From Dimorphilus gyrociliatus (taxonomy: Eukaryota > Animalia > Annelida): a stretch of DNA of 64,000 bases. A program made the position numbers and the translations under genes. Each line of letters starts with the position of its first letter. The stretch's first letter is position 1. Shown piece after piece: positions 9,651-64,000 of the stretch. The DNA lies in contig CAJFCJ010000026.1 of NCBI GenBank assembly GCA_904063045.1, positions 536,964 through 600,963 of the forward strand, given 5' to 3'. The notes below the pieces were generated by a model. It was given only the letters and a program-made list of their open reading frames with translations, did not search any database and was not told the DNA's origin.

Positions 9651-10539
9651 TATTCTTTCCAAACAGTTTCCTTCATAAATTTCGATAAAAAGCAAAATAT
9701 TATAAAAACATAAAAATTGTCTGCCAGTCATTCCTCATTCCATTCTATTCGGCTTACTTTAAGAAAAGCGTAACAATAGATCAATGATCAATATGAAGGA
9801 AAACAGTCTGAAACGAAAAAACGGATTAAAACAAGCCAAGATCTTCTTCATATTATGTATGATGCGGTTAATTGAACAAGTGTAGCATCCGATGGCTCTT
9901 TTCATAATTTTTGGTTTAAAACCAAATCTCTTCATTGTCGTCGATTAGGTTTCGTTCAATAAATTTTGGTTTAAACAATATCTTCTTCATGGTCGTCTTT
10001 TCATGAAAATGTCCCTCCAAAATTTACGACTTTCCCATCAGTCTGTTCGTTTTGATAACGAATCTTTCATCTCACATTTTTAGCATCAAGCTGAGTACAA
10101 CTTTGGAACAAAAAAAATCATTTTGCAGAACGAAATCTCCATCTAATTTTAAAATATTTCCACTATTTGATTTGTTTGAAAGGATATAGAAAAGCAGTAA
10201 TTTTGACTAGTTTTATAGTTTCCAATTTATTCCCCATCTACAATTTCAACGATCAGTTCGTCCTCAAAAGTTCTCTTCCATCTTATTTCGTGTTTACCAT
10301 ACTTTTTAATGAACCTTTCATCGATCTACCAATTAGAAGATTCGCTAATGATTACCTCTTTGGATTCATCAAATAGTAGTAACTTTTGTATTTAACAATT
10401 TTATAGCGTCCTTTTTTCTTATCAAGTTTTTCCACTTCTTCATTCCTTTCAGCAGTTCTTCACTTTCGAATGTTCTATTCTACGGTAGTTTCAGTGACGT
10501 CATTTCCGGCTTTTCCCAAATTTTTACTCTAAAAGATGT

Positions 10540-11451
10540 AACATATACTGTATGTGTTGTCGTCGGTATGTAGGTACTAAGTTGGAATAATCTTATATTC
10601 GACAATAATCGCTAATAATTTGAAGGAAATTTGCTGAATAATGAACAATGCAATAGAGAATGAAGTTATGATACAGTCTTTAAGTTTGAATGATACAACG
10701 CCATATCATCACGTGAGTTTGGCATCATGCATTATGACCATCGACTGCACTGGCGAAGGCAATGTAAATAGAGTGGCTTGAGAGGTGGGGGATTGAATTC
10801 CTAATGTCTCTTTCCACCTTATTATGACCTGAATAAATCTGGCATGCCCGTTCCAAAAATTCTTTCGAGATCTATCCTAGTTTCAATTTGTCTCTTACTT
10901 TGTTAAACAGTTTCGTATTCAGCATATTTCGTTCAATCGATTACGTTCATCAGATATTACAAGCTTTTCTTGGGTTGATAGCGAAGTAGTTGTGTTGTAG
11001 CAGAGTTTAGGGCAGTACAGGCTATAAAGGGTGAACTAGTAGCTCCCAATATCCGAATATATCAAGGGTCATGACAGAAGAGAGAAGATGACCTTTCCCA
11101 GTAGGATCTTCGTAGAGGAAACCGAAGTAGAGGAATGTGTACTCTGACGTTCACAAACATTGATTTCATGTGAGTAGTGATGGGCCTGGCAGTAAGACAT
11201 TTAAAGACTGGCTGTGGTACTTGGCATTACGATTCGAACGGTTTCTTTCTTGAGATTCTTAGCGCCGTGATGTGGAAGATAAAATTCAACTTCATCGTCA
11301 GGTACAGGACAAGTGTAATCCTTGTCGAGCAGGGTCTGTATTCCTTTGAACTATTCGGTGTTAAATGTTAGCTTGTCGTCGAATAGATTGAAATCCGCCT
11401 TTAGCCATAGATTTATTATTATGAAGGATGGTTAATAGCACGAATGTCATT

Positions 11452-11482
<31 letters not shown>

Positions 11483-12150
11483 GTTGAACGAAAGTGATGA
11501 ACACTACTGCTCGTTTCTGTGTATGAGATGCAATTTATCATATAGGGTTCTTCGGCGGTTGGAGAGAGAGAGAGGTTCGGTACCAACCGAGTGGGTACTT
11601 GATATACGTGAAACTATTGCGTCGAAACATTTGTAGAGGACCATGATGAGGAGTACAACTGTATACAGCTGGTTGTTTCTTAGTAGGCAATCGACAACGT
11701 AAGCAATATATGTCGTACAATGGATCTAAGTGAGGCAACATTATTTTACTTGTTCTAAGACAACTGGCTGAAACGAGTTGTTCGTATACGATTTGTCAAT
11801 ACAGCATTATTCATCTGGCTTTGGTTTATATGACGTTCGTAGGAGAAATTTACGGCTTATCAAAGACATTGAGGCTCCAGTATCTATTAAGGCAATCATC
11901 TTGCGAATGGTAGATACCTGTTGATGGCACTTGTGCTTCTGTCTCGTAGATAAGCATTCTATCATTGTTGATGTCTGATTGATTGATGCTAACAGGAAGG
12001 GCTGGGCTGGCTGTTGTTGAATCTTTGTGATGGACGGATGTATCGCGTGGTTTGCTTACATTTATCCCAATCAAATTTAGATGAACAATTTACGTTTGTA
12101 TGATCGCTTCGTAGGCAGTTAGATCAACGCTCCAACAATTCAATTAGTCT
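10540..12150 (-). mobile_element. BEL/Pao pol relic inside the left arm (protease and RT fragments)
   Basis: Mirror of 62007-63617, which encodes MIALIDTGASMSLISRKF (aspartyl protease), DEVEFYLPHHGAKNLKKETVRIV and GATSSPFIACTALN (BEL/Pao RT motifs) in broken frames. Confidence 0.85.
11453..11480. repeat. (AG)14 microsatellite (mirror at 62677-62704)
   Basis: Direct reading; same length in both arms. Confidence 0.95.
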
Positions 12151-12499
12151 TTTTTACTCTCTAGGTTCGTTTTTATATACATTTTAACGGCTTTTCTCTC
12201 CAATTTTTCTATTTATTCATTCGTTTCAACAGCTCTCTATTTTCAAAACTCACGTTCTATGGTTATTTCCCCATATTCAGTCATGTCCTTTCCAGCTTTT
12301 TCCAAATGTGATCTAAAATATATTACAAATGCATGTACTGTATATAACGATACTAAAATCATATACATTTTCACTAAATATTTACCCTACGATTTATACT
12401 GCAAATTTCACTTTTGTTGAACAAAAAGATACTTTCCCACTTGCCAGAAAAAAAGGAGAAAGTTTTCAACTTGTTAATTCGACGAATTACATGGAAATC

Positions 12500-12670
12500 A
12501 ATAACGTCACTTCCGGTGAAAGAGCACGAAACAAAGTTCCATCGTAAAAAACATGACCAACTGTAAGCGAGTCATGTTTTTTTTTGCCGAATTATTTATC
12601 GGCTTTTATTTTCAGTTAAAAAAAGGTGCAACATGCAATTTTAGGCCATGTTGCATTTCCTAAGTTACCA
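12500..12670 (+). other. Triple-hairpin element preceded by ACGTCACTTCCGG (ETS-CRE-like motif), copy 1 of 6
   Basis: Stems AAAAAACATGAC/GTCATGTTTTTT (12546-12582), GCCGA/TCGGC (12586-12603), TGCAACATG/CATGTTGCA (12627-12655). Other copies: 17027-17193 (+), 48295-48485 (-), 54255-54435 (-), 56830-56997 (-), 61487-61657 (-). Confidence 0.8.
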
Positions 12671-13699
12671 AAATGAGTGTCAAGTGGGATTGGTGAAGTG
12701 TTTGGAGTGAAGAGAATCATGTTAATCATTTCAAATGAAATGAAAATTGAAATTTTCCGTCTTTTGATTTTTGCGAGATCCTTGAAAAAACTTATTGAAA
12801 AACGTATAAAATCAGAGAAAAATCATCGACAAAATAGAAAACAATCATTGTTTAATTGGACAATGTGATTGTCGAAAGTATTGCGTCTCTTCTGAAAACA
12901 ATCATTGTTTTCTATTGTCGAAAATCTGACAGAGAAAACGACGGGGTCTTCTCAATTTGGTAACTGACAGTCCACCGTCAATTTTTCTCCTATATTTATA
13001 CAAAATAGTCACGTGATAGCCACGTTGCGAGTTGTTGTTGTTGTTGTTTTAATTATAGGCTGAGTTTTGGAACTAATTAATTGGACAATGTGATTGTCGA
13101 AAGTACTGCATCTCTTGTGAAAACATATTGGAAAATGATTATCTAAGATTATTCTGATCTTTTCAATCTTGTACAGTATGATATTGAATTGTTGCTTTGT
13201 GTAAACAGCAAATGACGAAAGAAACTGTTTTTATAGATTTGTGTTCAACTAATAACCGTAGACGACGACGATCACCTCTAACGTTGAACTAAGAGAAAAA
13301 GGGGCAACGGTGAGATAGGGAAAGGACAAATACACTTACCACTCTTACACCTAGTCACACAAATTACAAACAACATTGACATCGCAACGAAAAGGAACAA
13401 ATGCTGGTTTAATCACTGCAAGAACAATGTCGATCAGCAGTGTTGTAAATAGTATAAGAGGAAAGCATCACTATCAAAAAATACCCTCACCTGTACCTCA
13501 TTCCGATAAGCTCCACACATTTGACAAAGAATTGCAGTAGAATACGAATATAGAACATTTTCCTAAGGTTAAAAATCAAGTGTTCCTGTTAATTAAATAA
13601 TAATTACATTGTGTAATAAATTACAAAGGAATGGCTTTTTTCCGTTATTTGTCGGAAAAGCTAGAATTTGTTTGGGATAACTGTCATCGGTTCGCTCAG

Positions 13700-14960
13700 A
13701 TCGTCAGCTACGAAGTTTACTGGACAATGATTCATTTGTTTCTCTTTAGAAGAGATTGTAAGATGCTTTGTTTTCCAAGTTTGATGTCAATAACATTGTT
13801 TTAATGAGACCTATGACTCCCGTCTTGTGTATGCAATATGGTGAATAGCGCGATCGTAGACAGGCAATTACTAGGATGTATACTTTATCATCTGGAATGT
13901 TCCTATATACAGGTCCAGTAACGTCTATGGCGCAATCTTGGAACGGGCTGGTAAATTCCCCGGACTTTCGTTGTCTGCTTCAATTTATCGGACCTTCCAA
14001 GTGTTAAATAGATGCCATCTTCATTTGTTTGACCAGAGGACCTTTATAGTGGCTTTAATAGGTTTGAGTTGTAGAGATGAATGGTGACTAATCTTTAGCT
14101 GCGAGTACTTGATGTAGCCGCAGTGTAAGGTTTTCTAATTCTTCTTCATTGTTTCCAACTAAGATAAGGTCGTCCATATAGAAGGATATGTGATCTTTTC
14201 TTACGGTGACAATATCGATACCAAGCAAGAGGGTAAAGTTATCACGTCTAAACAGAATTCTGTAGAGGACCATGATGAGTAGTGCATTAGTGCAGACCAC
14301 TTCGTAAACAGTTAGAATCGATTGAGGATTTGGTCCAGTCGCCTTTTATCCTCTGATTTCGTATGAATATATGAAGGACAGTAGGCTAAGCATAGATTAT
14401 TGGCTGAACATAGACAATTCGAATTTTTATCCAATGATGGGTTCAGGGGTGCGGTAGTTTTTGGTTCATTAATTTTACTGGATGGTATAGTTTGTGGACT
14501 TCTAACTTTAACCTTGCTCTCTCAATTTGGAGGTTCATCTTCCGTTGCATATCGACATTTGGGAGGCATTTGATTTATAGCATCTTTTCTCAGTATGCTA
14601 ATTCTAGAGTTGGAATTGTAATGAGGAACCTTCGTAATTTCGGCCGGCATTTGAATAAAACGTTCCGTCATTTTCTTGATTCTAACGAATTAGAAATTTT
14701 CGAACGTTGCACAATGTTGTTCTTCAACTGTTAAAGAATTTTCTGGCTCTTGTATTTGAATGTGGATTGATAACTTACATGATTCTTTAGTCGAATTTGT
14801 TAAATGATACGTTCCATTTTGCGCCGTCAATCTCTCCTCCATCACAGTGTTCTCAGTTCTGTTCTGAGCATTCATATACATGAATTTTTCTTCGAATCCT
14901 TTTCTATTCACCTCCAGTTTCTCATCAAGTGCTGATGAGTCGACCATATTGGCCAGTTGG
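13700..14960 (-). mobile_element. Internally deleted BEL/Pao relic (gag-like, RT YMDD, integrase fragment), left arm
   Basis: SFYMDDLILVGNN (same as 50903-51169 ORF), EDGIYLTLGR and PFQDCAIDVTGP (integrase first Asp). Confidence 0.85.
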
Positions 14961-17349
14961 GTAATAATCTCGATAATAATTGAAAATAAATGTGGTAAGG
15001 ATGAATAACGTAGAAAGAGTGAAAGATGTTGTCTTAACTAACGTTCAAATAATATTTTTTCCCGAATTTCATATACAAAATAGTCCCGTGATTGCTGTTT
15101 ATCTAAAGATTATTCCGATCTTTACGATCCTGTAAAAAACGATATTTAATTGTTGCTTTGTGTAAACAGTAAGTGACCAAAATTTCGTCCCAATAAACAA
15201 ACTGTTTTTATAGATTTGTGTTCAACTAATAACCGTAGACGACGACGATCACCGGACATGTTTAACTGAGAGGAAAAAGAAGGACAACTATCAGACAAGG
15301 AAAGGACTAATACACTTACCACTCTTACATCTACTCACACCATTACAAACAACATTGACATGGCAACGAATAGGAACAAATGCTGATTAAATCGCTAAAA
15401 GTACAGTGTCGATCAGCAATGTAGTAAATAGTAACCGTGGAAAGCCTCACAATCAAAAAAGACCCTCATCAGTACTTCATTCCGATAATGTCCACACATT
15501 TGACAAAGAATTCGGGACGGGTGCTTTAACACAGAAAGGATTTTATTTTCAGAATAAATACTAATATTGAACATCTTCCTAAGGTTTTATCACTTCAAAC
15601 AATGGCCGACCATGTTACACAATCAAGCATTGTGTTTTTATAAAAGAGACGCTATTCAAGTGGGTCTGTGAATTAAAGATAAATTACATTGTGTAATAGA
15701 TTAAAAAGGAATGGTTCCTCTCTCTTATTTGTCGAAAAAGCTAGAATGTGTTTTTTTCCTTTCTGATATTAAATTATCCTTTGGTGTAGATAGGAAGTGA
15801 TACAAATTTCTATTTTAATGTTTTACGTATGAAACTTACAAAAATTGATATTCGACAACGATGATTAGGATTTCATCTCACAATTTGAACGATAAGTTCG
15901 TCGTGTTTTTCATTCTTTTTTACTGATTCTTAGAATTGTTGGTATGCAGTATACTAGAAGAATAGAAAAAAAACTCTACTCACTGCTAACTCGTAAGTGA
16001 AACGAAAAACTCTTTGAATGCGTCGAAGATATTCGGCACTTGTTGATACCATCGTCTTCTGGTCAAACATCAGTTGTAATTAATTGCCATTCATTCGTCC
16101 TATAATTATAATCGATAAACTAATTAGAAGATCTGTTAATCATTACGTCTTTGAACAGATCAAACAGTAGCAACTTTTGTATTTAATCGATTTAATTGAT
16201 TAATGTCGAATGTTTCGATAAAATACATATAGCCATGGGTACATAACACTTTGTTATAACAAAGTAAGCGTTTCATCCAACTTTCTTTACAGTATAAACT
16301 TTCAATCAAAAGATTTCAAATATTTCTTATTATCGATAAGAATATTTTAACGGAAAGTCATGGTTTATTGTTAGGATTAATGATTACAGTTTTGTCATTT
16401 TTTCATATAAAGTATTCAATTTTTAATGAAAATGACGTCATTCTTTCATTGTTTCCTACTAAATTTACATGACGATTGAGTTGAAACGGTTATACCTAAC
16501 TTTCTCGGTGTTCGGTGTTCAAGATGATTCAGTTTTAGATTTTATCTTTATCGTTTCTATATTTGCATGAACAAGCGTTATTTTTAATCGATGATAATCA
16601 GACTTCGGTTAATCTTTCAGTTTTATTCTCCAAATGTCGTTTTTTCTTTATTTATACACATGTTACTTTTCTCTTTCTTTTCATTTTTCAGGAAAAACTT
16701 CCTATCTCTTATAACGTCTTTTTTTCTCGAATCTTTCTATTTCTTCATTCCTTTCAGGCGTTCTCTACTTTCGAATGTTCTATTCCACGATTGTTTCTTA
16801 TTTTGAGTGACGTCATTTCCGGCTTTTCCCAAATTTACTTTAAAATATTTTACATGTATAAATATATACTAATATATACTAAAATCACTTTTTTTCCAAA
16901 ATATTTATCCCACGATTTATATAAAAAATTTCACTTTTATCAAACAAAGAGATACTCTGTTAGTTTTCGATGTGTCAGAAGAGAAATTTGTGAATTTGTT
17001 CATTCGGTGAATTACATGGAAATCCATGACGTCACTTCCGGTGAAAGTGAACGCAACAAAGTTGCACCGTAAAAAACATGACCAACTTTAAGCGAGACAT
17101 GTTCTTTTTGCCGAATTATTTATCGGCTTTTATTTTCAGTTAAAAAAAGGTGCAACATGCAATTTTAGGCCATGTTGCATTTCCTAAGTTACCAAAATGA
17201 GTGTCAAGTGGGATTGGTGAAGTGTTTGGAGTGAAGAGAATCATGTTAATCATTTCAAATGAAATGAAAATTGAAATTTTCCGTCTTTTGATTTTTGCGA
17301 GATCTTTGAAAAAACTGCGTAATTATTAACCCAGTTTTGACATTAATCT

Positions 17350-17780
17350 CATTACATTACTCATGTTTCGTGCCAAAAATAATATCTGTAATGTAATTGA
17401 ATGAAATGGCTATGTTTTCTATATCCTGTTGGAAATTGATATACAAACAGTATCTCAGTATGTAGAAGGCAATTCTACAATGCAATTTCCGCCATTTACA
17501 TATCAAGCATTAGCCTGAGATATTTTTTTCTAGGTCATATATTTGAAATTAAATCTATACATCTCTTCCCAGAGTATCCAAGAGACTTGAAGGATCATCC
17601 ATGAATTTGTGATAGTGGATATATTTTGGATACAGCTCTCCACAGACTCATCTCAAGGTCAATTGTTATCTTCTCAGGCTGTGACATGCCAGTCAGGTTT
17701 TCCATCATACCTTCATTTGCATCTACAATCACATCCTCATTTAAATTCTCATCCATTTCATTTCCATTCATAGTTTTCTA
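17350..17780 (-). pseudogene. MULE (Mutator-like) transposase fragment
   Basis: QPEKITIDLEMSLWRAVSKIYPLSQIHG*SF (~17590-17680) fits the MULE pattern P..i..DFE.a...Av...fP...i.GC.FH. It has an in-frame stop and no long ORF. Confidence 0.65.
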
Positions 17781-17849
17781 TATCATGATCTTGAAAAATA
17801 GCTTGACTGTCAAATGTTTGTAAGGCGTTCCGGTTTTTACGGATCGTAG

Positions 17850-19166
17850 AATGGTGAAAATTCAAAATTTGAAAAGGGTTCAACGTTCAACATTGCGTAT
17901 AGAAGAATCAACGATCCCTGATATATGATTTCCGTATTTGTTAAGAAAATGATGATTATTAGACAAAAAGAAAATTGTCCATTTACGGATGGACCCAGTC
18001 CGTTAAGGGTCAAGTTGAATGAGGGTAGAGAGGCAATCGACACCGAAGAATCATCGAAGCGCTTGAGAAAGTGGATGAGAGATCCTACCAATACGGGTGG
18101 AGAAGATTGGATGGATTGGGATCATACGTTTCTATGGACGAAGAAAGACCTATACAGCGATTCCACCTATAGTGTAATTGGAGCTACTCAAGTTGCAGAC
18201 ATCTGTACTCTTTATGGTTCATCCGTTAATGAATATATTGGTGTGAGCTCTTGGAAAGTCGCTGCCCACGAACTGGCACACAATCTTGGATCCTATCACG
18301 ATGGATCAAGATCCAGCGCAGCGTGTTCACCAGAAGCCAAAAATATAATGTCACCCTATTTCGGCAATCTTGAAATTGCTAAGATCAGACATTCTTTTGT
18401 GTTTAGTCAATGCTCAATTGACGCTATCTACAAAACCATTAATGGACAAACTAGCAACGGATTCCCCAGAATTTGCGTTATGAATAAAATATGCGGAAAT
18501 GACGCATTCAATCAGGACGAAATCACACAGGACAATCAAGCTCCGGGCGCTATTTATTCGTTGGAAGAACAATGCGTATTGATGTTCGGCAACGGAGCCG
18601 CTCCTAGTTACAGATGCCCAAACGAAAGAGATAATGTTTGTCAACGTCTTGTTTGTAAACTAGGAGACTATTGCTATTTTCAAGATCCGGGAGCGCAGGA
18701 CGGAAGTCCTTGCGCCAAGGATAAAGTGTGTATTAAGGGTAAATGCGTCCATTCGTCCCAGTTAAGTTTCCGTAGAAAGAAGAACAATAATTCCGATTGT
18801 ACGCCGGGAGTGACTATGAAAAGAACTGTGTTGTATCAATGAGGGCGTGAGAATTTATGCCTATGTCGAGAATATATTACCTACTATCCGCATAGGTGTT
18901 TTAACAAAGCCAAAAAAAGATGCTGTAAAAAATTTAACGAAATGGGTTTGACTTGGGCCAACGTTCAAACGGTCAACTCCACTTCCGCTTGCGATCCGAA
19001 TCCTTGCAAGAACAGCGGCGTATGCCATCAATACAGTAGTTCCGCTTACGTGTGCGAATGGGAAGTGGAGGAAAGAATTGCGATAAAGCTGAAGGTGACT
19101 GATATAGTAAGTTGCAGTGGTGACGGAGCATCCAAAGTATGGAGCTCAATTTTGCGGCAGATTTAA
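17850..19166 (+). pseudogene. Intronless ADAMTS-like (M12B reprolysin) metalloprotease with Cys-rich, PLAC/ShK-like and EGF-like modules; disrupted and 5'-truncated
   Basis: ORF 17925-18842 has the zinc motif AAHELAHNLGSYHDG, Met-turn NIMSPY and ADAMTS Cys-rich PGAIYSLEEQC...DGSPCAKDKVCIKGKC. The same frame resumes past TGA 18840 with CREYITYYPHRC...RCCK and CDPNPCKNSGVC...YVC. There is another in-frame TGA at 17919 and no signal peptide or prodomain upstream. Confidence 0.8.
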
Positions 19167-19599: not shown

Positions 19600-22050
19600 C
19601 CAATGAAATAAACAAAATTCAAACTACGGTAATGGTACTCTGATTTAGTGTTAAATTGTTGAAAATCATAAAAATTCGAAACCAAAAAAAAGATCTACAC
19701 GAAAACAGGATGTAGTAAATAGCAAAAAAAAATGTCACTGTCATTTCAAATTGTTCGATTTTTAGAGCATTTTATTCGAATCGTTTATTAACAACACTAA
19801 TGAACATTAAAGAATGAGAAGGATATGATAGATAAAACATGGCTACTGAAAATCTATCGATCCCAAAAACATTTATATATATATTTCGTATTGCGACATT
19901 TTAGGGTTATTCGTTAAAAAGCCCAATTGTTAACTATTAAAGTTAAAGGTTATACATGAGATTCAATGCTTCCCTTTTCCTTTTTTCTTCTTATTCTTCC
20001 TTCTTTAAAATGGACGAGAAGATAATTGAAAAATCTTATTTTCAATGCCTGCAAGCTTTGCTCATTTGACCAATATTTCATAATTTTACAAAGTTTCCTT
20101 TTTCCGCTATTAAAAGCGTTTCTTTCCTTCTCCTTTTCTCCTCTTTCAATATCACGATCTTTGAGAAAATTCGGAAAATCAATAAGAAAAACGATTAATT
20201 GATTGATTGATTAATAAACTATTCAGTTTTTTCTTCTTCATTCTTTAGAATGATGACACAATTATCTGAAAAAATTACCAACAAATTATAAACTTTGCGC
20301 TAGAAATAAACAGCATGACTAAACAAACCTATTATCGTTCATCGGTTGTCATAGTTCGCATCGAAACGTTTCTTTTGTGCAAGTCTTTCGTAGACAATTC
20401 TTTCCATACTGTAGTTACAAACTGTTGTATGTTAAAAAGGACTTGAAAATATCAACGTTTATCCCCAAAAAAAAAGTCATTTTCTTTAACGGCAAGGTTT
20501 CTTAATGTCGGCGGTCAAAGAGGCGGATGTACGTCATAATCACGTGCAGACATCCATATGTCAAGGTCATTCCGTCTAAAATTCGAATATTAAAAACTTA
20601 TTAAACTGGCCAATAAACAGCAAATTTCCCATCTTTTGCATGTATTGCGTTCAAAGATATATTATCCTTCTTTAAATAGAAAAACAATGTAAAAAGGTTT
20701 ATTTTTTCAAGAGATTATTTTTGTGGTTGAAAATAATTGATATTTCTCATTTAAATGTATTAACGTTATTTCAATTCTATCGATCTTTTCACTAATAAAT
20801 CTTTGTCTAAAAATATTTTCTTAATAACTAAACAATTAATGCTTTTCTTTCGTTTTTCATATTAAAAAAAGGGGTTTGAAAATTGGAGTCGAAAAAAATA
20901 ATTTCGTTGAAAATGCGTCGAGTTATTTACCGGTGAAAATTTTCATTACTTATATTCTCAATCAATCAGTCTATGATTTTCTTTGAACATATCAAATGAG
21001 AAGAATCAATGTTATCGTCAACGTATCTATCTTTTCACTTATGAAAGAATAAAGAGTTTTAAAAAGAAAGAAGCATATTCTACATCAAGATTTCAATATT
21101 GTTTAATGAATTTCCTCGATCTCCTTAGGAGTGATGTTTATCTATGATTCCTTTTTTTCTCACGTATTGAAGAGTGTTGTTTATAACGTATTTCTTATGG
21201 AAAAATGCGAATGTAGAAAAAAATAAACTCGAATAAAATGATTGCGTTGAAAAAAATAAAACACAATATTTAGCGCCATCTGGAAGATAAAAACTTTTTG
21301 ATCGTGTACTTAGTGGATTGACTATTAATTTTTACTTTTTTTCAACAAAATAAATTTTCGTCTCGAGTAAATAAAATATAGAGATAAAAAAAGAAAAACT
21401 TGAAATTTTGTGGATGAATGACAACGACATCTGCAGTAGTATTTTTCGCGGTCATTTTCAAATAGCAGAAAAAGCATAAACAATAGTTTACAGCGTCTCA
21501 TTTCCTTGTGGATTTTAGTATTAATTTAGTAAAAATTAGAAAATTCAGTCTATCGATTTCGACTGTCATTGAAAACAATTAATACAACTTTCCTTTGCTG
21601 TTGTCTTCGTTCAAATAAATGATTTTTTCATCAAATTACTACTTTTTCCTGCCTCAGTCCACTAATCTGTAATAAATTTCCTCCATCTTTTTAGAAGTGA
21701 TACTTATCTACGAGTTCTTTTTTATTACATATTGAAGAGTGTTGTTTATAACGTATTTCGCATAGAAAATGAGGAATTTGTTGAAAAATGGACTCGAATA
21801 AAATGATTGCGTTGAAAAACATAGTAGACAATATTTAGCGCCATCTGCAGAGTGAAAATATTTGTGATTAATTTCTCAATCGATTTATCGATAAATTACT
21901 GATAATTTTTGCTTAATATCAATATAATAGACTTTCTTGCGTAGGTAAATGTACTATTGAGGTGAAAAACGAAGAGATTGAAATTCCGTATGAATGACGA
22001 CGACGACATCTGCAGTTGTTGTTTTCGCGGTCGTTTTTAAACACTGAATT
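19600..22050 (+). repeat. Direct segmental duplication, copy B
   Basis: Near-identical to 4935-7600, with scattered SNPs and one larger indel near the start. Confidence 0.95.
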
Positions 22051-22199
22051 GTACCCTAGATTTTCTTCATCTTTGGATTAAAAGTTAAAAAAATAGGCCA
22101 ATAAGTGCTGATTATCAAACATTGATACATGAGATTTTGTTAGATGTAAAGGCGGTGGTACGAACGTATAAATGCATAAATACATAAAAGTGGATCCAT

Positions 22200-24699: not shown

Positions 24700-26200
24700 C
24701 TTGTCGTTGAATAGATTGGAATCACCCTATAGCCATAGATTTTTTATCACGAAGAACTGTGGTGCAGTATTTGAAATTTCCTAAAGTTGTGGGAGGGTTG
24801 AGTATAGTTGGCTAATACTTCGAGAGTACCGTGTCGAAGTGATGAACATTACTGCTCGTTTCCACGTATGACATGCAATTTATCATATAGGGGGATAGGG
24901 TTCTTCGGCGGTTGGAGAGAGAGAGAGAGGTTCGGTACCAACCGAGTGGATACTTGATAAAGGTAAAACTATTGCGTCCAAGCATTTGTAGATAATTATT
25001 TGTGGAGAAATTTTACGGCTTATGACAGACATTGAGGCTCCAGTATCTATTAAGGCAATCATCTTGCGAATGGTAGATACCTGTTGATGGCACTTGTGCT
25101 TCTGTCTCGTAGATAAGCATTCTATCATTGTTGATGTCTGATTGATTGATGCTAACAGGAAGGGCTGGGCTGGCTGTTGTTGAATCTTTGTGATGGACGG
25201 ATGTATCGCGTGGTTTGCTTACATTTATCCCAATCAAATTTAGATGAACAATTTACGTTTGTATGATCGCTTCGTAGTCAGTTAGATCAACGCTCCAGCA
25301 ATTCAATTAGTCTTTTTTACCCTCGTGGTTAATATTGATAAATGAGGCTAAGACATAAGCTAGACATAGGTGGCTATCGGAGCATAATCATCTCGAATTT
25401 GTATTTGTTGGTAAGTTTGTTGTTGTATTCATATCTCTTGGGCCATTGTGTGAATCCGAAGGGTAACGTTGACCTGGATTGGTATGATAGTTTTTTTTGG
25501 CATATATTCTTCCGTGGAAGGTTTCGTTATTATTGTTTCTGAGACTATTGTAGGAGGAGCATAGGATTCGTTTTGTATACTATTTGTAATATTTGTGATT
25601 GATTGTTTTTCCAAATTCTTGCACAAGTATGTTAAAGTCAGAAGAGTGGTTAAAGTGAATATATCCGACTTCCTGTTGAATATTTAATGGTAACTTAGAG
25701 ATGAATTAGTTGAGTTTTATGATATTGAGGGTGACCTTTCTTTTCCTGTCTGTTCAAAGATATAAAAAGTGTTTTGAAATCAATCCAATCGGAGACACTG
25801 TTAGCTTTGTTGAGGATTCTTCCTGCGTGATGGTTAAGTATTGTAATTAAATCTTACGTCTTTAACTAGGTTCTCAAAGCTACTCTTGTTTGGCTTTTTA
25901 TTATTTAGTTTGCAATATTCACCAACATATTTCATTTCCGAAATCCAACGTTCGTCGACTGTTGGAGCTGTTTCTTGCATTTGAATAGAGATCGTTGAGT
26001 TATGTGGTTCGTTAGGAGTGTGTTGTTTGAGTCGGACTCATCATTTCGATAAAGCACTCTATCTTAGTAGTCATTTCTGCTTTTATCAAGTAATTAATTG
26101 GCTTCCAGTCAAATTCAAGAAATGCAACATTTTCCAACAGCCAAAGAACAAGATGGCGGAACTTGGAACATTCGAAAAATTTAAATTCTTCAAAACAAAC
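24700..26200 (-). mobile_element. BEL/Pao gag-protease relic
   Basis: ALIDTGASMSVISRKI (24883-25128 ORF). 24870-25315 is near-identical to parts of 11500-12155. GRILNKANSVSDWIDFKTL is homologous to GRILNKT...WVEFKKL at 49.4 kb. Confidence 0.75.
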
Positions 26201-27775: not shown

Positions 27776-27859
27776 TTGTCTATAGTATTAATATTCTCAC
27801 AGATTGTTCCTTGCCTTTCTGACACTTTGATTCGAGACAAACGAAGTCATACCGGACTG

Positions 27860-51900: not shown

Positions 51901-52110
51901 AACTATCTATGCACAACTTCAAACTGGGACGCATAACCCGTAAGGTCACAGAACGTACCTTTGAGATATATACCGGTCACAGCAATATCGAAAGAGACGT
52001 CCGGGATATAATCCCCTACCTACCAAATGAGTCTCTGTCTGTTTCTCTTTCCTCAACGACGACATTAGCAATAATAAAGGATCAATGTTTTCGCGCGATA
52101 CCTATTTTAT
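48960..52110 (+). mobile_element. Most complete BEL/Pao LTR retrotransposon relic (gag-RT-integrase-DUF5641-like), frameshifted and internally deleted
   Basis: FYLPHHGVSNPKKKVILIVFNAA...SLNGILVAGPSLL; NIKQMFMNI...MTRHIFGATSSPF...SFYMDDL; GRL...HHILTELIHQIHHEMNHAS; IESMTNCRPI...VSPVDF; PDVLVL...FKLGRITR. Confidence 0.92.
49015..49025 (+). promoter_or_regulatory. YY1-like CAAGATGGCG motif (also ~1381, ~26149, ~34591 reverse, ~39815 reverse, ~46627)
   Basis: Matches the AAGATGGCG/AAAATGGCG YY1 consensus; function here is untested. Confidence 0.3.
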
Positions 52111-54254
52111 ACCTCACTTAAATGTTTTTTTATACGAAAAGATTGGAAATTCATTACACACAGAAACTAACCAAGATACAGGGGAAGAGACAGTGAACGA
52201 AAGATGAATGCAAACGGAGACTGACAGAAGGTCGAGAGACAGTGATTGATGGGTTGGGAAGATAATAATCAACTGAAGTGAAAAATTCAATAAAAGCTAC
52301 TGGCAGCGGAACGAGGACCAAAACACGATAATCGGGAAAGAGAGAGAGAGATATGCAAGGAGAAGCAAAGACCATCAAGCATCTTTTCACTCTTTTCCTT
52401 TTTTGAAATTCATTTTGGAGAGAAGCTCTACGAGTTTGATTTTTGCTCTTGAAGAGAGACATTAAAGTTCTATGGAGAGATATGATTCTCCACTTGTCAA
52501 TTGGACAGATATTGTACAAAACGTCATTCTTCTCGCGATTATTGCCTCTATTCGTATATACATAACATAAAAGAACTGTCCTGTACTTTTATACGTGTCC
52601 GTAAGACCTTCCTAACGGTCGCCATACACAACTGTAACTGCCTACAGTGTAGTAAAGAGGAAACTCGAGAGAGGAGGGCAGATTGCCTCCTCAGAATTGC
52701 CAACAGACCTCAAAGCATTCACACATTTGCATATTCACGCCATGTTATATTCATACCTCCGCTCATATACAAAATGTCATTTTCGAGGCGAAGGAGTGCC
52801 TACAAATGCATCATTACTACTAGGTTTAGGGGTTAACCTATAACATAAGATTCAATCAATGGCTTCTCCATCCTTCTCATTCAAGTTCTAATTATCAAAT
52901 CTTCTTCAGTATCTATGATCCAATAAATTTAGAACAGTTCAAACCAATTCATACTAGTGTATCGTTTCAGCTCCTTGTTCATCTATGGTTACTATTGAAT
53001 AGTTGTTGCCGTTTTATCTGGTGACTGACGGGTGGTTGTCACAGTGTCTGGATTGGGTGACGATTGAAGGGAAGCAGTATTCAACTGCAACGAAACAACA
53101 TGCTGTAGTTGTGATATGGGAAATCGTCTACTGCGATTTTCATGTTATAATCTGGGAGATCTTAATTAGAGCTCTTTAAAAGGAGAACATGAAATATATA
53201 CAGTGGCAGAGTGGGATTATCACTGATGCCATAGAGACTATCCCTGCATTTAGAATGTTTAATATCTCCTTGTGGGCCTTAGTCTTCCTAACAATCTAGC
53301 TCATAGTGGACCCTCTGTTAGCTCTATTTTCTCCCTTCATCTATTTCGAATGGTTCATAAAAACAAAAGTAGAATAATTTAAGACAAAGGAAAAGTTTGT
53401 AAATATGATGAAATATTTTTCTTTATTCAAGTCAACACTGCTTATCTCTATCATCTAGTAGAATAGATCTGACGAATGTATGAGTAAGGCATTGCTACGA
53501 TGATATTATACAAACAAACACTTATTATTATCTTGATTCGAGTTGATAATCAAATTTCTGCTCTCTCTCTCTCTCTCTCGTCACAAAATATAGACTGTAC
53601 ATAGCGTGTCTTCAAGCCTAAACTGAGCTAATCTTGCACCATTTTAACATCTTATCCTTCTCCTAGTCCTCTATCTCTCATTATGTATGTATACAATCTA
53701 CTGGAAGGTTATCGATAAATTCGAAGCACAGCCTAAGTAAAAAGGAAAAGAAATAGTTTATATAAATAAGATATTGAGAAAGACTTTACTGATTCAGTTA
53801 GTTTTTAGCTGAGTAGCTCCGATTTCCGTTCCTCTTATCTTCTATAACGGCCAAGACAGACAAAATTCACTCAAGGAAGCTTTAGTCTGACACTTTAATC
53901 TCATCAGCAGATGGCAGAGTCTGTCACCATGTCATCTTCAAGGATGCAAAATTCCTTATTTAGAAATCCTATAGAGGGAACTACTAAATTGAAGATTCGT
54001 TATCACGTGCTCATTTGGTATAAATACAACACTGTCACTCGCTCAAAGTCAGTTACCACTTACCCTGCCTAGGTGACTCCTGATTTCTCAGTCATAAAAG
54101 AGAACCTTCCTTTTTCGATCTGATTGCTTTTTGCTGATCAATTAGCGAACGCAGACTACTATCATATCTTGTATAACACTCTTAAATTCTACTTCTATTC
54201 CTATTATCACGTATGTGATTGAGATATACTTTTACTCGAAAAACTCTCCAATTT

Positions 54255-55639: not shown

Positions 55640-56500
55640 ACAATTTAAATCTAATGGGTGATAAGAAAAAGCGTTACAAACAGATAAATATAGGACGGGG
55701 CGATTTAACCCATTAACATGCAATGGAATGGGTAAATCCAGTAGAAACGGAGCAGGGGATGACGGAACAACTGTTAATTCCAGCGAAAGGTGAGTATTAT
55801 TGTTAGCGGATCGAGTTAAGGTGATTCTAAGGGAGATAAAGGGATAAGGAGTTAGATATATAGCTCTAGTGTCCATTAATGTGGGCGTCATAGGCATCCT
55901 TGGAGCCTTTGATTGCCTCAGCCACGCAGAGTTGGGATAACATTTTACGGTATCCGTATGCTAAGCCAAGCGCTTGCATGACCTTTTGGTTATCGCGGTA
56001 CCAGGCACCCAACGAACCAACCACAAATGACAGAATGCGGACGGTGATGCCATTGGTCTCCAGTTCGGTCTGGAGTACTCGGTACTTGGTGATCTTTTCC
56101 TCAGCAGATGTGGCCAAGGTGCCGGGGCGCTCGAAGGGAACCGCAATATCGATTATATCGATTCTGGAACCGTTGCGGACAACGATGTCCGGCCTAACGT
56201 TCCTGCCAATTATTGTTTATCTCGTGGTGGAACTGTGGCTGGTTTTGGTGCCACGCTCGTCCCACTTCGGCCGTTATGTTCGGGCAGAGCTCGTTGGAAA
56301 AATACCACTCTAAATTAATTGTTTTGCGTAGGCGAGTGGACGCCGACCGAGTTACCGACATGACGGTTTGAGAGGTGGAAGAAGAGGAGGAGAAGGGATT
56401 GGCCACTGAGCCATTCAGGTAGTCTACCAAGAGTTGGGGCGTAACGTGAGTGCCCCTCGCTACCCGGGATCTATCCGCCTTTACAAGTGCAGAGCACAAA
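55640..56500 (-). mobile_element. RLE-type non-LTR retrotransposon relic (endonuclease and 3' UTR) lacking RT
   Basis: GRNVRPDIVVRNGSRIDIIDIAVPFERPGTLATSAEEKITKYRVL...LSFVVGSLGAW (PD-(D/E)xK RLE C-terminus), stop at 55866. Confidence 0.88.
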
Positions 56501-59196
56501 CATTGTCCAATTAATTAGTTCCAAAACTCAGCCAATAATTAAAACAACAACAACAACAACAACTCACAACGTGGCTATCACGTGACTATTTTGTATAAAT
56601 ATAGGAGAAAATTGACGGTGGATTGTCAGTTACCAAATTGAGAAGACCCCGTCGTTTTCTCTGTCAGATTTTTCTCTGATTTTATACGTTTTTCAATAAG
56701 TTTTTTCAAGGATCTCGCAAAAATCAAAAGACGGAAAATTTCAATTTTCATTTTCTTAAACATTTGAAATGATTAACATGATTCTCTTCACTCCAAACAC
56801 TTCACCAATCCCACTTGACACTCATTTTGGTAACTTAGGAAATGCAACATGGCCTAAAATTGCATGTTGCACCTTTTTTTAACTGAAAATAAAAGCCGAT
56901 AAATAATTCGGCAAAAAAAACATGACTCGCTTAAAGTTGGTCATGTTTTTTACGGTGCAACTTTGTTGCGTTCACTTTCACCGGAAGTGACGTCATGGAT
57001 TTCCATGTAATTCACCGAATTAACAAATTCACAAATTTCTCTTCTGACACATCGAAAACTAACAGAGTATCTCTTTGTTTGATAAAAGTGAAATTTTTAT
57101 ATAAATCGTGGGATAAATATTTTGGAAAAAAAGTGATTTTAGTATATATTAGTATATATTTATACATGTAAAATATTTTAAAGTAAATTTGGGAAAAGCC
57201 GGAAATGACGTCACTCAAAATAAGAAACAATCGTGGAATAGAACATTCGAAAGTAGAGAACGCCTGAAAGGAATGAAGAAATAGAAAGATTCGAGAAAAA
57301 AAGACGTTATAAGAGATAGGAAGTTTTTCCTGAAAAATGAAAAGAAAGAGAAAAGTAACATGTGTATAAATAAAGAAAAAACGACATTTGGAGAATAAAA
57401 CTGAAAGATTAACCGAAGTCTGATTATCATCGATTAAAAATAACGCTTGTTCATGCAAATATAGAAACGATAAAGATAAAATCTAAAACTGAATCATCTT
57501 GAACACCGAACACCGAGAAAGTTAGGTATAACCGTTTCAACTCAATCGTCATGTAAATTTAGTAGGAAACAATGAAAGAATGACGTCATTTTCATTAAAA
57601 ATTGAATACTTTATATGAAAAAATGACAAAACTGTAATCATTAATCCTAACAATAAACCATGACTTTCCGTTAAAATATTCTTATCGATAATAAGAAATA
57701 TTTGAAATCTTTTGATTGAAAGTTTATACTGTAAAGAAAGTTGGATGAAACGCTTACTTTGTTATAACAAAGTGTTATGTACCCATGGCTATATGTATTT
57801 TATCGAAACATTCGACATTAATCAATTAAATCGATTAAATACAAAAGTTGCTACTGTTTGATCTGTTCAAAGACGTAATGATTAACAGATCTTCTAATTA
57901 GTTTATCGATTATAATTATAGGACGAATGAATGGCAATTAATTACAACTGATGTTTGACCAGAAGACGATGGTATCAACAAGTGCCGAATATCTTCGACG
58001 CATTCAAAGAGTTTTTCGTTTCACTTACGAGTTAGCAGTGAGTAGAGTTTTTTTTCTATTCTTCTAGTATACTGCATACCAACAATTCTAAGAATCAGTA
58101 AAAAAGAATGAAAAACACGAAATAACATGCAAAACAACTGGACACGACGAACTTATCGTTCAAGGTCTAGATAGGAAATAAATGTAAAACAGTAAACTAA
58201 TTAAAAAGGAACAAAAAGGATATTTAATTAGCAATTACCGCTTTTGTGTACTCCAAAGTTGTACTCAGTTTGATGTCAAATTGTGAGATGAAATCCTAAT
58301 CATCGTTGTCGAATATCAATTTTTGTAAGTTTCATACGTAAAACATTAAAATAGAAATTTGTATCACTTCCTATCTACACCAAAGGATAATTTAATATCA
58401 GAAAGGAAAAAAACACATTCTAGCTTTTCTTAGAGAGAGGAATCATTCCTTTTTAATCTATTACACAATGTAATTTATCTTTAATTAACAGACCCACTTG
58501 ATTAGCGTCTCTTTTATAAAAACACAATGCTTGATTGTGTAACATGGTCGGCCACTGTTTGAAGTGATAAAACCTTAGGAAGATGTTCAATATTAGTATT
58601 TATTCTGAAAATAAAATCCTTTCTGTGTTAAAGCACCCGTCCCGAATTCTTTGTCAAATGTGTGGACATTATCGGAATGAAGTACTGATGAGGGTCTTTT
58701 TTGATTGTGAGGCTTTCCACGGTTACTATTTACTACATTGCTGATCGACACTGTACTTTTAGCGATTTAATCAGCATTTGTTCCTATTCGTTGCCATGTC
58801 AATGTTGTTTGTAATGGTGTGAGTAGATGTAAGAGTGGTAAGTGTATTAGTCCTTTCCTTGTCTGATAGTTGTCCTTCTTTTTCCTCTCAGTTAAACATG
58901 TCCGGTGATCGTCGTCGTCTACGGTTATTAGTTGAACACAAATCTATAAAAACAGTTTGTTTATTGGGACGAAATTTTGGTCACTTACTGTTTACACAAA
59001 GCAACAATTAAATATCGTTTTTTACAGGATCGTAAAGATCGGAATAATCTTTAGATAAACAGCAATCACGGGACTATTTTGTATATGAAATTCGGGAAAA
59101 AATATTATTTGAACGTTAGTTAAGACAACATCTTTCACTCTTTCTACGTTATTCATCCTTACCACATTTATTTTCAATTATTATCGAGATTATTAC

Positions 59197-60457
59197 CCAA
59201 CTGGCCAATATGGTCGACTCATCAGCACTTGATGAGAAACTGGAGGTGAATAGAAAAGGATTCGAAGAAAAATTCATGTATATGAATGCTCAGAACAGAA
59301 CTGAGAACACTGTGATGGAGGAGAGATTGACGGCGCAAAATGGAACGTATCATTTAACAAATTCGACTAAAGAATCATGTAAGTTATCAATCCACATTCA
59401 AATACAAGAGCCAGAAAATTCTTTAACAGTTGAAGAACAACATTGTGCAACGTTCGAAAATTTCTAATTCGTTAGAATCAAGAAAATGACGGAACGTTTT
59501 ATTCAAATGCCGGCCGAAATTACGAAGGTTCCTCATTACAATTCCAACTCTAGAATTAGCATACTGAGAAAAGATGCTATAAATCAAATGCCTCCCAAAT
59601 GTCGATATGCAACGGAAGATGAACCTCCAAATTGAGAGAGCAAGGTTAAAGTTAGAAGTCCACAAACTATACCATCCAGTAAAATTAATGAACCAAAAAC
59701 TACCGCACCCCTGAACCCATCATTGGATAAAAATTCGAATTGTCTATGTTCAGCCAATAATCTATGCTTAGCCTACTGTCCTTCATATATTCATACGAAA
59801 TCAGAGGATAAAAGGCGACTGGACCAAATCCTCAATCGATTCTAACTGTTTACGAAGTGGTCTGCACTAATGCACTACTCATCATGGTCCTCTACAGAAT
59901 TCTGTTTAGACGTGATAACTTTACCCTCTTGCTTGGTATCGATATTGTCACCGTAAGAAAAGATCACATATCCTTCTATATGGACGACCTTATCTTAGTT
60001 GGAAACAATGAAGAAGAATTAGAAAACCTTACACTGCGGCTACATCAAGTACTCGCAGCTAAAGATTAGTCACCATTCATCTCTACAACTCAAACCTATT
60101 AAAGCCACTATAAAGGTCCTCTGGTCAAACAAATGAAGATGGCATCTATTTAACACTTGGAAGGTCCGATAAATTGAAGCAGACAACGAAAGTCCGGGGA
60201 ATTTACCAGCCCGTTCCAAGATTGCGCCATAGACGTTACTGGACCTGTATATAGGAACATTCCAGATGATAAAGTATACATCCTAGTAATTGCCTGTCTA
60301 CGATCGCGCTATTCACCATATTGCATACACAAGACGGGAGTCATAGGTCTCATTAAAACAATGTTATTGACATCAAACTTGGAAAACAAAGCATCTTACA
60401 ATCTCTTCTAAAGAGAAACAAATGAATCATTGTCCAGTAAACTTCGTAGCTGACGAT
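59197..60457 (+). mobile_element. Internally deleted BEL/Pao relic, right arm
   Basis: Mirror of 13700-14960; YMDD at ~59977, PFQDCAIDVTGP at ~60212-60245. Confidence 0.85.
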
Positions 60458-62006
60458 CTGAGCGAACCGATGACAGTTATCCCAAACAAATTCTAGCTTT
60501 TCCGACAAATAACGGAAAAAAGCCATTCCTTTGTAATTTATTACACAATGTAATTATTATTTAATTAACAGGAACACTTGATTTTTAACCTTAGGAAAAT
60601 GTTCTATATTCGTATTCTACTGCAATTCTTTGTCAAATGTGTGGAGCTTATCGGAATGAGGTACAGGTGAGGGTATTTTTTGATAGTGATGCTTTCCTCT
60701 TATACTATTTACAACACTGCTGATCGACATTGTTCTTGCAGTGATTAAACCAGCATTTGTTCCTTTTCGTTGCGATGTCAATGTTGTTTGTAATTTGTGT
60801 GACTAGGTGTAAGAGTGGTAAGTGTATTTGTCCTTTCCCTATCTCACCGTTGCCCCTTTTTCTCTTAGTTCAACGTTAGAGGTGATCGTCGTCGTCTACG
60901 GTTATTAGTTGAACACAAATCTATAAAAACAGTTTCTTTCGTCATTTGCTGTTTACACAAAGCAACAATTCAATATCATACTGTACAAGATTGAAAAGAT
61001 CAGAATAATCTTAGATAATCATTTTCCAATATGTTTTCACAAGAGATGCAGTACTTTCGACAATCACATTGTCCAATTAATTAGTTCCAAAACTCAGCCT
61101 ATAATTAAAACAACAACAACAACAACTCGCAACGTGGCTATCACGTGACTATTTTGTATAAATATAGGAGAAAAATTGACGGTGGACTGTCAGTTACCAA
61201 ATTGAGAAGACCCCGTCGTTTTCTCTGTCAGATTTTCGACAATAGAAAACAATGATTGTTTTCAGAAGAGACGCAATACTTTCGACAATCACATTGTCCA
61301 ATTAAACAATGATTGTTTTCTATTTTGTCGATGATTTTTCTCTGATTTTATACGTTTTTCAATAAGTTTTTTCAAGGATCTCGCAAAAATCAAAAGACGG
61401 AAAATTTCAATTTTCATTTCATTTGAAATGATTAACATGATTCTCTTCACTCCAAACACTTCACCAATCCCACTTGACACTCATTTTGGTAACTTAGGAA
61501 ATGCAACATGGCCTAAAATTGCATGTTGCACCTTTTTTTAACTGAAAATAAAAGCCGATAAATAATTCGGCAAAAAAAAACATGACTCGCTTACAGTTGG
61601 TCATGTTTTTTACGATGGAACTTTGTTTCGTGCTCTTTCACCGGAAGTGACGTTATTGATTTCCATGTAATTCGTCGAATTAACAAGTTGAAAACTTTCT
61701 CCTTTTTTTCTGGCAAGTGGGAAAGTATCTTTTTGTTCAACAAAAGTGAAATTTGCAGTATAAATCGTAGGGTAAATATTTAGTGAAAATGTATATGATT
61801 TTAGTATCGTTATATACAGTACATGCATTTGTAATATATTTTAGATCACATTTGGAAAAAGCTGGAAAGGACATGACTGAATATGGGGAAATAACCATAG
61901 AACGTGAGTTTTGAAAATAGAGAGCTGTTGAAACGAATGAATAAATAGAAAAATTGGAGAGAAAAGCCGTTAAAATGTATATAAAAACGAACCTAGAGAG
62001 TAAAAA

Positions 62007-62674
62007 AGACTAATTGAATTGTTGGAGCGTTGATCTAACTGCCTACGAAGCGATCATACAAACGTAAATTGTTCATCTAAATTTGATTGGGATAAATGTA
62101 AGCAAACCACGCGATACATCCGTCCATCACAAAGATTCAACAACAGCCAGCCCAGCCCTTCCTGTTAGCATCAATCAATCAGACATCAACAATGATAGAA
62201 TGCTTATCTACGAGACAGAAGCACAAGTGCCATCAACAGGTATCTACCATTCGCAAGATGATTGCCTTAATAGATACTGGAGCCTCAATGTCTTTGATAA
62301 GCCGTAAATTTCTCCTACGAACGTCATATAAACCAAAGCCAGATGAATAATGCTGTATTGACAAATCGTATACGAACAACTCGTTTCAGCCAGTTGTCTT
62401 AGAACAAGTAAAATAATGTTGCCTCACTTAGATCCATTGTACGACATATATTGCTTACGTTGTCGATTGCCTACTAAGAAACAACCAGCTGTATACAGTT
62501 GTACTCCTCATCATGGTCCTCTACAAATGTTTCGACGCAATAGTTTCACGTATATCAAGTACCCACTCGGTTGGTACCGAACCTCTCTCTCTCTCCAACC
62601 GCCGAAGAACCCTATATGATAAATTGCATCTCATACACAGAAACGAGCAGTAGTGTTCATCACTTTCGTTCAAC

Positions 62675-62705
<31 letters not shown>

Positions 62706-63617
62706 AATGACATTCGTGCTATTAACCATCCTTCATAATAATAAATCTATGGCTAAAGGCGGATTTCAATCTATTCGACGACAAGCTAACATTTAACACC
62801 GAATAGTTCAAAGGAATACAGACCCTGCTCGACAAGGATTACACTTGTCCTGTACCTGACGATGAAGTTGAATTTTATCTTCCACATCACGGCGCTAAGA
62901 ATCTCAAGAAAGAAACCGTTCGAATCGTAATGCCAAGTACCACAGCCAGTCTTTAAATGTCTTACTGCCAGGCCCATCACTACTCACATGAAATCAATGT
63001 TTGTGAACGTCAGAGTACACATTCCTCTACTTCGGTTTCCTCTACGAAGATCCTACTGGGAAAGGTCATCTTCTCTCTTCTGTCATGACCCTTGATATAT
63101 TCGGATATTGGGAGCTACTAGTTCACCCTTTATAGCCTGTACTGCCCTAAACTCTGCTACAACACAACTACTTCGCTATCAACCCAAGAAAAGCTTGTAA
63201 TATCTGATGAACGTAATCGATTGAACGAAATATGCTGAATACGAAACTGTTTAACAAAGTAAGAGACAAATTGAAACTAGGATAGATCTCGAAAGAATTT
63301 TTGGAACGGGCATGCCAGATTTATTCAGGTCATAATAAGGTGGAAAGAGACATTAGGAATTCAATCCCCCACCTCTCAAGCCACTCTATTTACATTGCCT
63401 TCGCCAGTGCAGTCGATGGTCATAATGCATGATGCCAAACTCACGTGATGATATGGCGTTGTATCATTCAAACTTAAAGACTGTATCATAACTTCATTCT
63501 CTATTGCATTGTTCATTATTCAGCAAATTTCCTTCAAATTATTAGCGATTATTGTCGAATATAAGATTATTCCAACTTAGTACCTACATACCGACGACAA
63601 CACATACAGTATATGTT
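62007..63617 (+). mobile_element. BEL/Pao pol relic inside the right arm
   Basis: DTGA protease motif ~62270-62290; FYLPHH...RIV ~62860-62930; GATSSPF ~63108-63135. Confidence 0.85.
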
Positions 63618-64000
63618 ACATCTTTTAGAGTAAAAATTTGGGAAAAGCCGGAAATGACGTCACTGAAACTACCGTAGAATAGAACATTCGAAAGTGAAGA
63701 ACTGCTGAAAGGAATGAAGAAGTGGAAAAACTTGATAAGAAAAAAGGACGCTATAAAATTGTTAAATACAAAAGTTACTACTATTTGATGAATCCAAAGA
63801 GGTAATCATTAGCGAATCTTCTAATTGGTAGATCGATGAAAGGTTCATTAAAAAGTATGGTAAACACGAAATAAGATGGAAGAGAACTTTTGAGGACGAA
63901 CTGATCGTTGAAATTGTAGATGGGGAATAAATTGGAAACTATAAAACTAGTCAAAATTACTGCTTTTCTATATCCTTTCAAACAAATCAAATAGTGGAAA

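Follow-up and report, generated by a model that had tools for sequence, protein, structure and literature searches.

The 64,000-nucleotide (nt) stretch of DNA analyzed here, called the window throughout, comes from the miniature annelid Dimorphilus gyrociliatus (GenBank assembly GCA_904063045.1, contig CAJFCJ010000026.1, positions 536,964 to 600,963 of the forward strand), and it contains a giant inverted repeat whose two arms enclose a gene-bearing spacer. A repeat finder and a comparison of the window with itself by BLAST (self-BLAST) agree that positions 10157–17316 are the reverse complement of 56699–64000, and this match is too long and too identical to be due to chance. With about half of our confidence, the structure is read as a real, one-off inverted segmental duplication, large and palindrome-like, with a spacer of 39.4 kb, lying in a transposon-rich, gene-poor island. 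Its parts are the following:

10157 to 17316, plus strand: left arm of the inverted repeat, read as the derived copy; its inner end, 17316, would be the novel junction.
17317 to 56698, no strand: spacer of 39,382 nt with host genes, transposon fragments and a bacterial-type tag gene.
56699 to 64000, minus strand: right arm of the inverted repeat, read as the parental copy; it runs past the end of the window.

The original prediction, made from the letters of the window, had proposed a giant inverted repeat with arms of more than 7 kb that continue off the window and enclose a spacer of about 39 kb. The repeat is borne out by the repeat finder, self-BLAST and global alignment, the right arm is still matching at 64000, and the measured spacer length agrees with the estimate. 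The arm limits proposed at that time (10157–17315 and about 56700–64000) were confirmed in the main, but the inner ends lie exactly at 17316 and 56699, and 10157 does not give the true start of the left arm because it is merely the mirror of the window end at 64000, the outer ends being off the window. The visible arm lengths of 7.16 kb (left) and 7.30 kb (right) are lower bounds, with the right arm leaving the window at 64000. The repeat finder resolves the inverted arm pairs 10157–15725/58432–64000 (5,569 nt, 100%), 15901–16930/57091–58120 (1,030 nt, 100%) and 16924–17279/56743–57098, while self-BLAST reports one block at 10157–15888 against 64000–58276 with 99.79% identity and another at 15901–17316 against 58120–56699 with 99.16%. 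In global alignment, the arms differ by 10 substitutions and 5 insertion/deletion (indel) events of 7, 116, 27, 1 and 7 nt over about 7,160 nt; counting substitutions only (10 in about 7,150 aligned positions), their identity is 99.86%, which is above the >99% used in defining large palindromes (PMC8327919).

The window contains no N, and thus no scaffold gap lies inside the structure. Searches within the window revealed no older symmetric homology between the two ends of the spacer, nor between the left flank and the arm, and no third copy of a long arm segment was found in the 64 kb, where only fragments of about 150–330 nt occur in the spacer at 24837–25340. A 46-nt pattern from the arm gave 0 matches in metagenome, genome and viral contig collections, from which the window itself is also absent. 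As for the setting, the window has 34% G+C, only 14 open reading frames (ORFs) of at least 110 amino acids (aa) in 64 kb, and many decayed retroelement fragments. It has been reported that the genome of D. gyrociliatus contains transposon-rich, gene-free islands (PMC7854359), and the window is such a transposon-rich, gene-poor island.

The arms are a mosaic of decayed, nested retroelement pieces without genes, in which the longest stop-to-stop ORF is 177 aa. Each arm contains two copies of a repeat unit of about 0.65–0.9 kb, along with a 150-nt fragment, as well as two copies, 82% identical, of a 0.4-kb unit; a further repeat family has pieces both in the arms and in the spacer (24837–25340). 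The main components are listed below:

56500 to 57400, plus strand: repeat unit a, about 0.9 kb and resembling a long terminal repeat (LTR), straddling the right inner boundary (56699).
61066 to 62040, right arm: repeat unit b, the partner of unit a.
16709 to 17316 (truncated) and 12185 to 13091: left-arm mirrors of the repeat units.
59812 to 60408, plus strand: decayed reverse-transcriptase remnant with a YMDD motif, between units a and b; mirrored at 13749 to 14345, minus strand.

Units a and b are 84–96% identical and flank the reverse-transcriptase remnant as the LTRs of an old element would. The protein traces are faint: the reverse-transcriptase fragment at 14091–14345 (minus strand) has a weak RVT_1 match (E 0.016) below the Pfam cut-off, the ORF that follows the remnant is integrase-like by eye only and has no Pfam match, and an aspartyl protease fragment at 11810–12055 (minus strand) has a weak, sub-threshold Pfam match. 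The original prediction had taken the arms to consist of nested copies of a single smaller repeat element; units do recur in each arm, but the repeated units together make up only about one-third of it. Tandem Repeats Finder detected no tandem array in either arm, the only arrays in the window being at 1141–1246, 2609–2852 and 41998–42708. Since the flanking repeats of the older element within the arms are only 84–96% identical and the two arms are about 99.8% identical, the duplication is much younger than its contents, which were copied as a block.

The composition of the arms bears on the proposal that a single long repeat (at least 7 kb) that was recently active inserted twice independently, once in each orientation, and that its left copy lost the inner end. 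It has been reported that the transposons of this genome are products of old or very recent expansions (PMC7854359), and near-identical copies, one of them truncated, would suit a young family. However, the arms contain no long ORF (maximum 177 aa), an older element with diverged flanking repeats and fragments of other families would have to travel in an unknown composite vehicle, and the 64-kb window has no third long copy; two insertions are therefore considered most unlikely. The narrower version of this idea, in which the arm pair represents two insertions of a single LTR retrotransposon, was rejected, as the boundary cuts through a repeat unit and the internal LTR-like pair is 84–96% identical against about 99.8% for the arms.

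The inner ends of the arms were examined by aligning both with the sister copies of the repeat unit. In the right arm, homology to the repeat unit runs uninterrupted across 56699 and about 200 nt into the spacer, and position 56699 falls in the best-conserved part of the unit, whereas the left arm follows the unit to 17316 and then passes into unrelated sequence (...GAAAAAACT up to 17316, followed by GCGTAATT). No terminal or symmetric structure is present at the inner arm ends. A boundary inside a repeat unit that continues into the spacer argues for an arbitrary breakpoint and not the end of an element; and because the right arm is continuous with its flank while the left arm is cut at 17316, the right arm looks like the parental copy and the left junction, 17316/17317, like the new breakpoint, judging from the sequence. 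Position 17316 may be either the end of the duplication or the point to which the left arm was trimmed by a later deletion. Templated insertions were not evident at the left junction, where 13-mer matches occur at chance level only.

Close to this junction, on its spacer side, lies the remainder of a metalloprotease gene:

17922 to 18839, plus strand: ADAMTS-like ORF with a zinc site (HELAHNLGSYHD) and a disintegrin-like/cysteine-rich part (Pfam, PDB).

This ORF starts 606 nt from the left junction. When it is aligned with the crystallized chain of ADAMTS-5 (structure 2rjq), the alignment starts at residue 77, so that the ORF lacks the signal peptide, the prodomain and about 76 residues of the catalytic domain. 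No upstream ADAMTS exons were found in 17317–17921 or in 7613–10156. A word search with the ORF gave no match in the length band searched, longer relatives lying outside that band. A stop codon is located at 18840–18842, and the same frame runs on for 107 codons (17922–19163 overall) with a weak EGF-like match. The missing 5' part and the continuation of the frame after the stop suggest that the locus is a pseudogene or has an unusual exon structure. A rearrangement breakpoint beside a truncated ADAMTS-like gene fits an event at the DNA level.

The differences between the arms are distributed very unevenly, as can be seen from the following segments:

10157 to 15601 against 58556 to 64000: outer block of 5,445 nt with 0 differences in the global alignment.
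15602 to 15735 against 58429 to 58555: divergent patch 1, with 6 substitutions and a 7-nt indel.
58121 to 58279: two right-arm segments (116 nt and 27 nt) without a counterpart in the left arm, where they would fall at 15885 and 15901.
16923 to 17316: divergent patch 2, adjoining the junction, with 4 substitutions, a 1-nt indel and a 7-nt indel.

No differences occur in the roughly 150 nt that follow patch 1, nor in the 1,022 nt that follow the right-arm-only segments. All 15 differences are thus within 1,715 nt of the junction, that is, in the inner 24% of the arm, for which P is about 5e-10 if differences were placed uniformly, and the divergence in the patches reaches 1–4% beside a block of 5,445 nt without any. 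Such clustering does not fit simple neutral divergence after a single duplication. Each right-arm-only segment is bounded by direct microhomology, TTGA (4 bp) for one and TCGTGT (6 bp) for the other, which is the signature of microhomology-mediated deletion and suggests that the gaps of 116 and 27 nt were made in the left arm; indels bounded in this way point to real mutational events and to arms that are, at least in part, distinct molecules. For patch 2, the older paralogous copy at 12350–12960 served as the outgroup to polarize the changes: all 4 of the 4 substitutions are derived on the left arm, and the 7-nt insertion and the 1-nt deletion in an A-run are derived on the right arm. The clustering could be caused by error-prone template-switching repair near the junction, by later arm-to-arm gene conversion in the outer part, or by assembly effects or the artificial homogenization of sequence during consensus polishing. 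Similarly, the identical block of 5,445 nt is suggestive of gene conversion but is equally explained by recent origin or polishing.

The same pattern brings in the possibility of an assembly artefact, in which only one arm is real and the second is either an allelic or population variant put in the wrong place or the product of chimeric joining through a repeat, introduced in an assembly made from PacBio continuous long reads (CLR) with merging of haplotypes. It has been reported that the assembly was produced from PacBio RS II reads (CLR) with PBcR, polished with Quiver and Pilon, and further processed with HaploMerger2 for reduction and SSPACE-LongRead for scaffolding (PMC7854359). Its length of about 78 Mb exceeds the genome size of 73.8 Mb by flow cytometry and 71.0 Mb by k-mers (71–74 Mb measured), and 2.8% of BUSCO genes are duplicated (PMC7854359); an oversized assembly with duplicated BUSCO genes leads one to expect some false duplication, and an artefact needs more weight for this assembly than the original prediction gave it. 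In addition, clustered single-nucleotide differences and indels of 1–116 nt beside long identical stretches resemble allelic variation, and the left junction lies within a dispersed repeat, where false overlaps arise. There is also a precedent, since the palindromes in the first assembly of Adineta vaga were attributed to erroneous scaffolding of phased haplotypes and were not recovered in the chromosome-level assembly (PMC8494291); as in that case, the present structure is a large inverted duplication in an invertebrate draft assembly in which two haplotypes were handled. Unlike those palindromes, however, it has no scaffold gap and a long unique spacer between its arms. The window without any N speaks against a scaffolding join, and the 39.4-kb unique spacer is unlike what hairpin-type chimeras of reads produce. 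Alleles, moreover, should share their inner flanks, but the sequence from 17317 onward is unique, and the microhomology deletions show two distinct templates. Taken together, an artefact is somewhat unlikely, though a serious possibility and the main rival of the duplication.

The original prediction had also offered an inverted duplication or palindromic amplicon as one of its two readings, and this fits what was found: the boundary lies within a repeat unit that is cut short in the left arm, and the identity exceeds 99%. Under an inverted segmental duplication, the right arm, a block of old and nested retroelement debris no shorter than 7.3 kb, would have served as the template for an inverted copy placed 39.4 kb from it, and the copying would have created the new junction 17316/17317 beside the 5'-truncated ADAMTS-like fragment. 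Probably DNA repair or replication, and not transposition, made the copy: break-induced replication could have switched templates to the opposite strand, or a break could have been repaired. The outer 5.4 kb may then be identical because the copy arose very recently, with error-prone synthesis close to the junction, or because gene conversion between the arms followed later; recombination between such arms would be expected to invert the spacer.

Several points weigh against this duplication. The outer ends and the true length of the arms lie outside the window, and the two copies, known from the assembled sequence, may not both be present on one molecule. Polishing or the mixing of haplotypes could likewise leave 5.4 kb without any difference next to a patch that diverges by 1–4%. 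Derived changes on both arms in patch 2 mean that one event of error-prone synthesis is insufficient. Finally, these arms are gene-free, unlike those of most described palindromes.

Large palindromic amplicons are the closest described class. They are defined as inverted repeats of more than 8 kb with more than 99% identity, and the spacers between their arms measure 77 bp to 358 kb (PMC8327919). Of the 26 palindromes of the human X chromosome, 21 have genes in their arms, and in primate X palindromes rearrangements are concentrated at the inner arms and the spacer (PMC8327919). The structure in D. gyrociliatus resembles these mammalian X palindromes in its arms of at least 7.2 kb, which are more than 99.8% identical at aligned positions, in its 39.4-kb spacer, and in the location of the differences in the inner 1.7 kb; it is unlike them in that the host is an annelid and the arms hold only transposon debris. 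The visible arm length of 7.16–7.30 kb, to be set beside the 8-kb threshold, is a lower bound. Replicative template switching is reported to make non-recurrent inverted duplications, through fork stalling and template switching/microhomology-mediated break-induced replication (FoSTeS/MMBIR; PMC2621351) or as duplication–inverted triplication–duplication rearrangements (DUP-TRP/INV-DUP; PMC4352052). With the duplications so described, the present structure would share an inverted copy of a block, an arbitrary breakpoint, and microhomology-bounded deletions and point changes near the junction; it departs from them in having derived changes on both arms and no visible triplicated segment.

Besides the ADAMTS-like fragment, the spacer contains the following features, for which the exons of the THAP, ADAMTS-like and MADF genes were searched singly and the annotated protein DgyrCDS13652 was used for MADF:

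32941 to 33723, plus strand: spliced MADF gene with a BESS-like second exon, annotated in Dimorphilus gyrociliatus as DgyrCDS13652 (232 aa).
38467 to 38808, plus strand: THAP-domain exon, covering profile positions 27–86/87.
40942 to 41523, minus strand: tag, encoding a bacterial-type 3-methyladenine DNA glycosylase I of 193 aa, intact and intronless (Pfam and structures).
41845 to 42948, minus strand: acidic tandem-repeat ORF of 367 aa with periods of 60 and 129 nt.
49192 to 52118, plus strand: decayed LTR-retrotransposon remnant (RVT_1, DUF5641).

All of the spacer genes named in the original prediction (tag, MADF-BESS, THAP, a repeat protein and a disrupted ADAMTS-like gene) are present according to Pfam and structure matches together with repeat analysis. 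The MADF ORF at 32899–33465 is 100% identical to DgyrCDS13652.

These interior genes bear on the proposal that the whole structure is a giant non-autonomous mobile element or composite transposon, with arms acting as terminal inverted repeats of at least 7 kb around a 39-kb cargo and with a transposase encoded elsewhere. The geometry of inverted arms fits such an element, the interior contains a foreign, bacterial-type gene, and the location of the outer ends off the window leaves room for a target-site duplication. THAP and MADF domains, both present in the spacer, are found in some transposase-derived proteins. However, the MADF gene belongs to the host, being both spliced and annotated, and the rest of the interior is ordinary host DNA together with a truncated gene and further transposon fragments. 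No transposase, pPolB, capsid or intact integrase was found among the 60 ORFs of this window in six Pfam scans, which bears out an observation of the original prediction and leaves the structure without the transposase expected inside a cut-and-paste transposon. Nor were the pPolB, retroviral-type integrase and capsid of a Polinton/Maverick or virus-like giant element found, the only such hits in the window being weak ones to decayed fragments of LTR retroelements (RVT_1, aspartyl protease and DUF5641). In the foldback (FB) transposons of Drosophila, the inverted arms are very long, are made of tandem short subrepeats and can enclose large stretches of unrelated DNA. The present arms are similarly long and inverted, but they hold no tandem array of subrepeats, and no FB-type coding sequence was seen; the arms are a patchwork of older, decayed retroelements. 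The right arm, moreover, continues as the same repeat unit into what would be the cargo while the left arm is truncated, as a breakpoint would be. The genome paper, for its part, mentions only Mariner and MULE among DNA transposons (PMC7854359). With no transposase-type gene, no subrepeat arrays in the arms and no symmetric inner ends, the cargo-carrying, non-autonomous giant element of the original prediction is unsupported in the window, and we consider it improbable. Still less credible is its fullest form, a giant composite transposon of at least 54 kb that would carry host genes and the bacterial-derived tag gene as cargo through the annelid genome.

The tag gene is of interest in its own right. 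Its ORF matches the Pfam family Adenine_glyco with an E value of 1.5e-80 and aligns end to end with the Tag structures of Salmonella and E. coli (E 8e-54), and in our reading of the structure alignment the Cys/His positions of the zinc site are kept. Excluding the sequence itself, its nearest relatives are bacterial or metagenomic and at most 70% identical; the named relatives are all bacterial, mainly Cytophagales and Balneolaceae with 58–66% identity. Its G+C content of 38%, with 36% at third codon positions (GC3), is close to that of neighbouring host ORFs (36–42%), and it has its own TATA-like upstream region. On the basis of these comparisons, tag is a candidate for horizontal transfer from a bacterium to the annelid lineage. 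The 367-aa tandem-repeat ORF, which matches no Pfam family, is encoded on the same strand as tag, 300 nt upstream of it, and an AATAAA signal comes after this ORF.

If the inverted segmental duplication is real, it would be a young one that meets or nearly meets the definition of a large palindrome, in one of the smallest known annelid genomes. It would then be a natural case for asking whether arms are homogenized and spacers flipped when there is no selection on arm genes, and by what route duplications come about in a genome that compaction has otherwise shaped. An artefact, on the other hand, would represent a local error in a widely used reference assembly and would affect the annotation of the truncated ADAMTS-like gene and its neighbours. 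In either case, no new kind of mobile element is revealed.

Other repeats are present in the window. A pair of 2.3-kb direct repeats outside the inverted repeat, at 5285–7612 and 19732–22060, is 98.9% identical and has sharp ends, with further patchy homology at 4978–5089/19614–19724 and 7696–7745/22314–22363; the 2.3-kb repeat holds internal subrepeats of about 0.4 kb, which are also found at 27043–27474 and 37190–37621. The possibility that these repeats are the LTRs of one element enclosing the left arm was rejected, because they have no TG...CA ends and no recognizable element structure, and the interval between them contains a host-gene fragment; they are instead two copies of another repeat. 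Two further segments, X (651 nt, 95%) and Y (216 nt, 98%), occur in permuted order, X then Y at 26922–27777 and Y then X at 36769–37719, an arrangement that pieces of a tandem or LTR-like unit would be expected to show. In the left flank, an ORF at 1846–2358 (plus strand) encodes an acidic, coiled-coil-like protein of 170 aa whose Pfam matches (DUF1690 and others) are all below threshold; should the arm reach that far left, a second copy of this ORF would lie off the window. The left flank also contains the tandem array at 2609–2852, which has periods of 31, 64 and 95 nt and comprises about 7.7 copies of the 31-nt unit.

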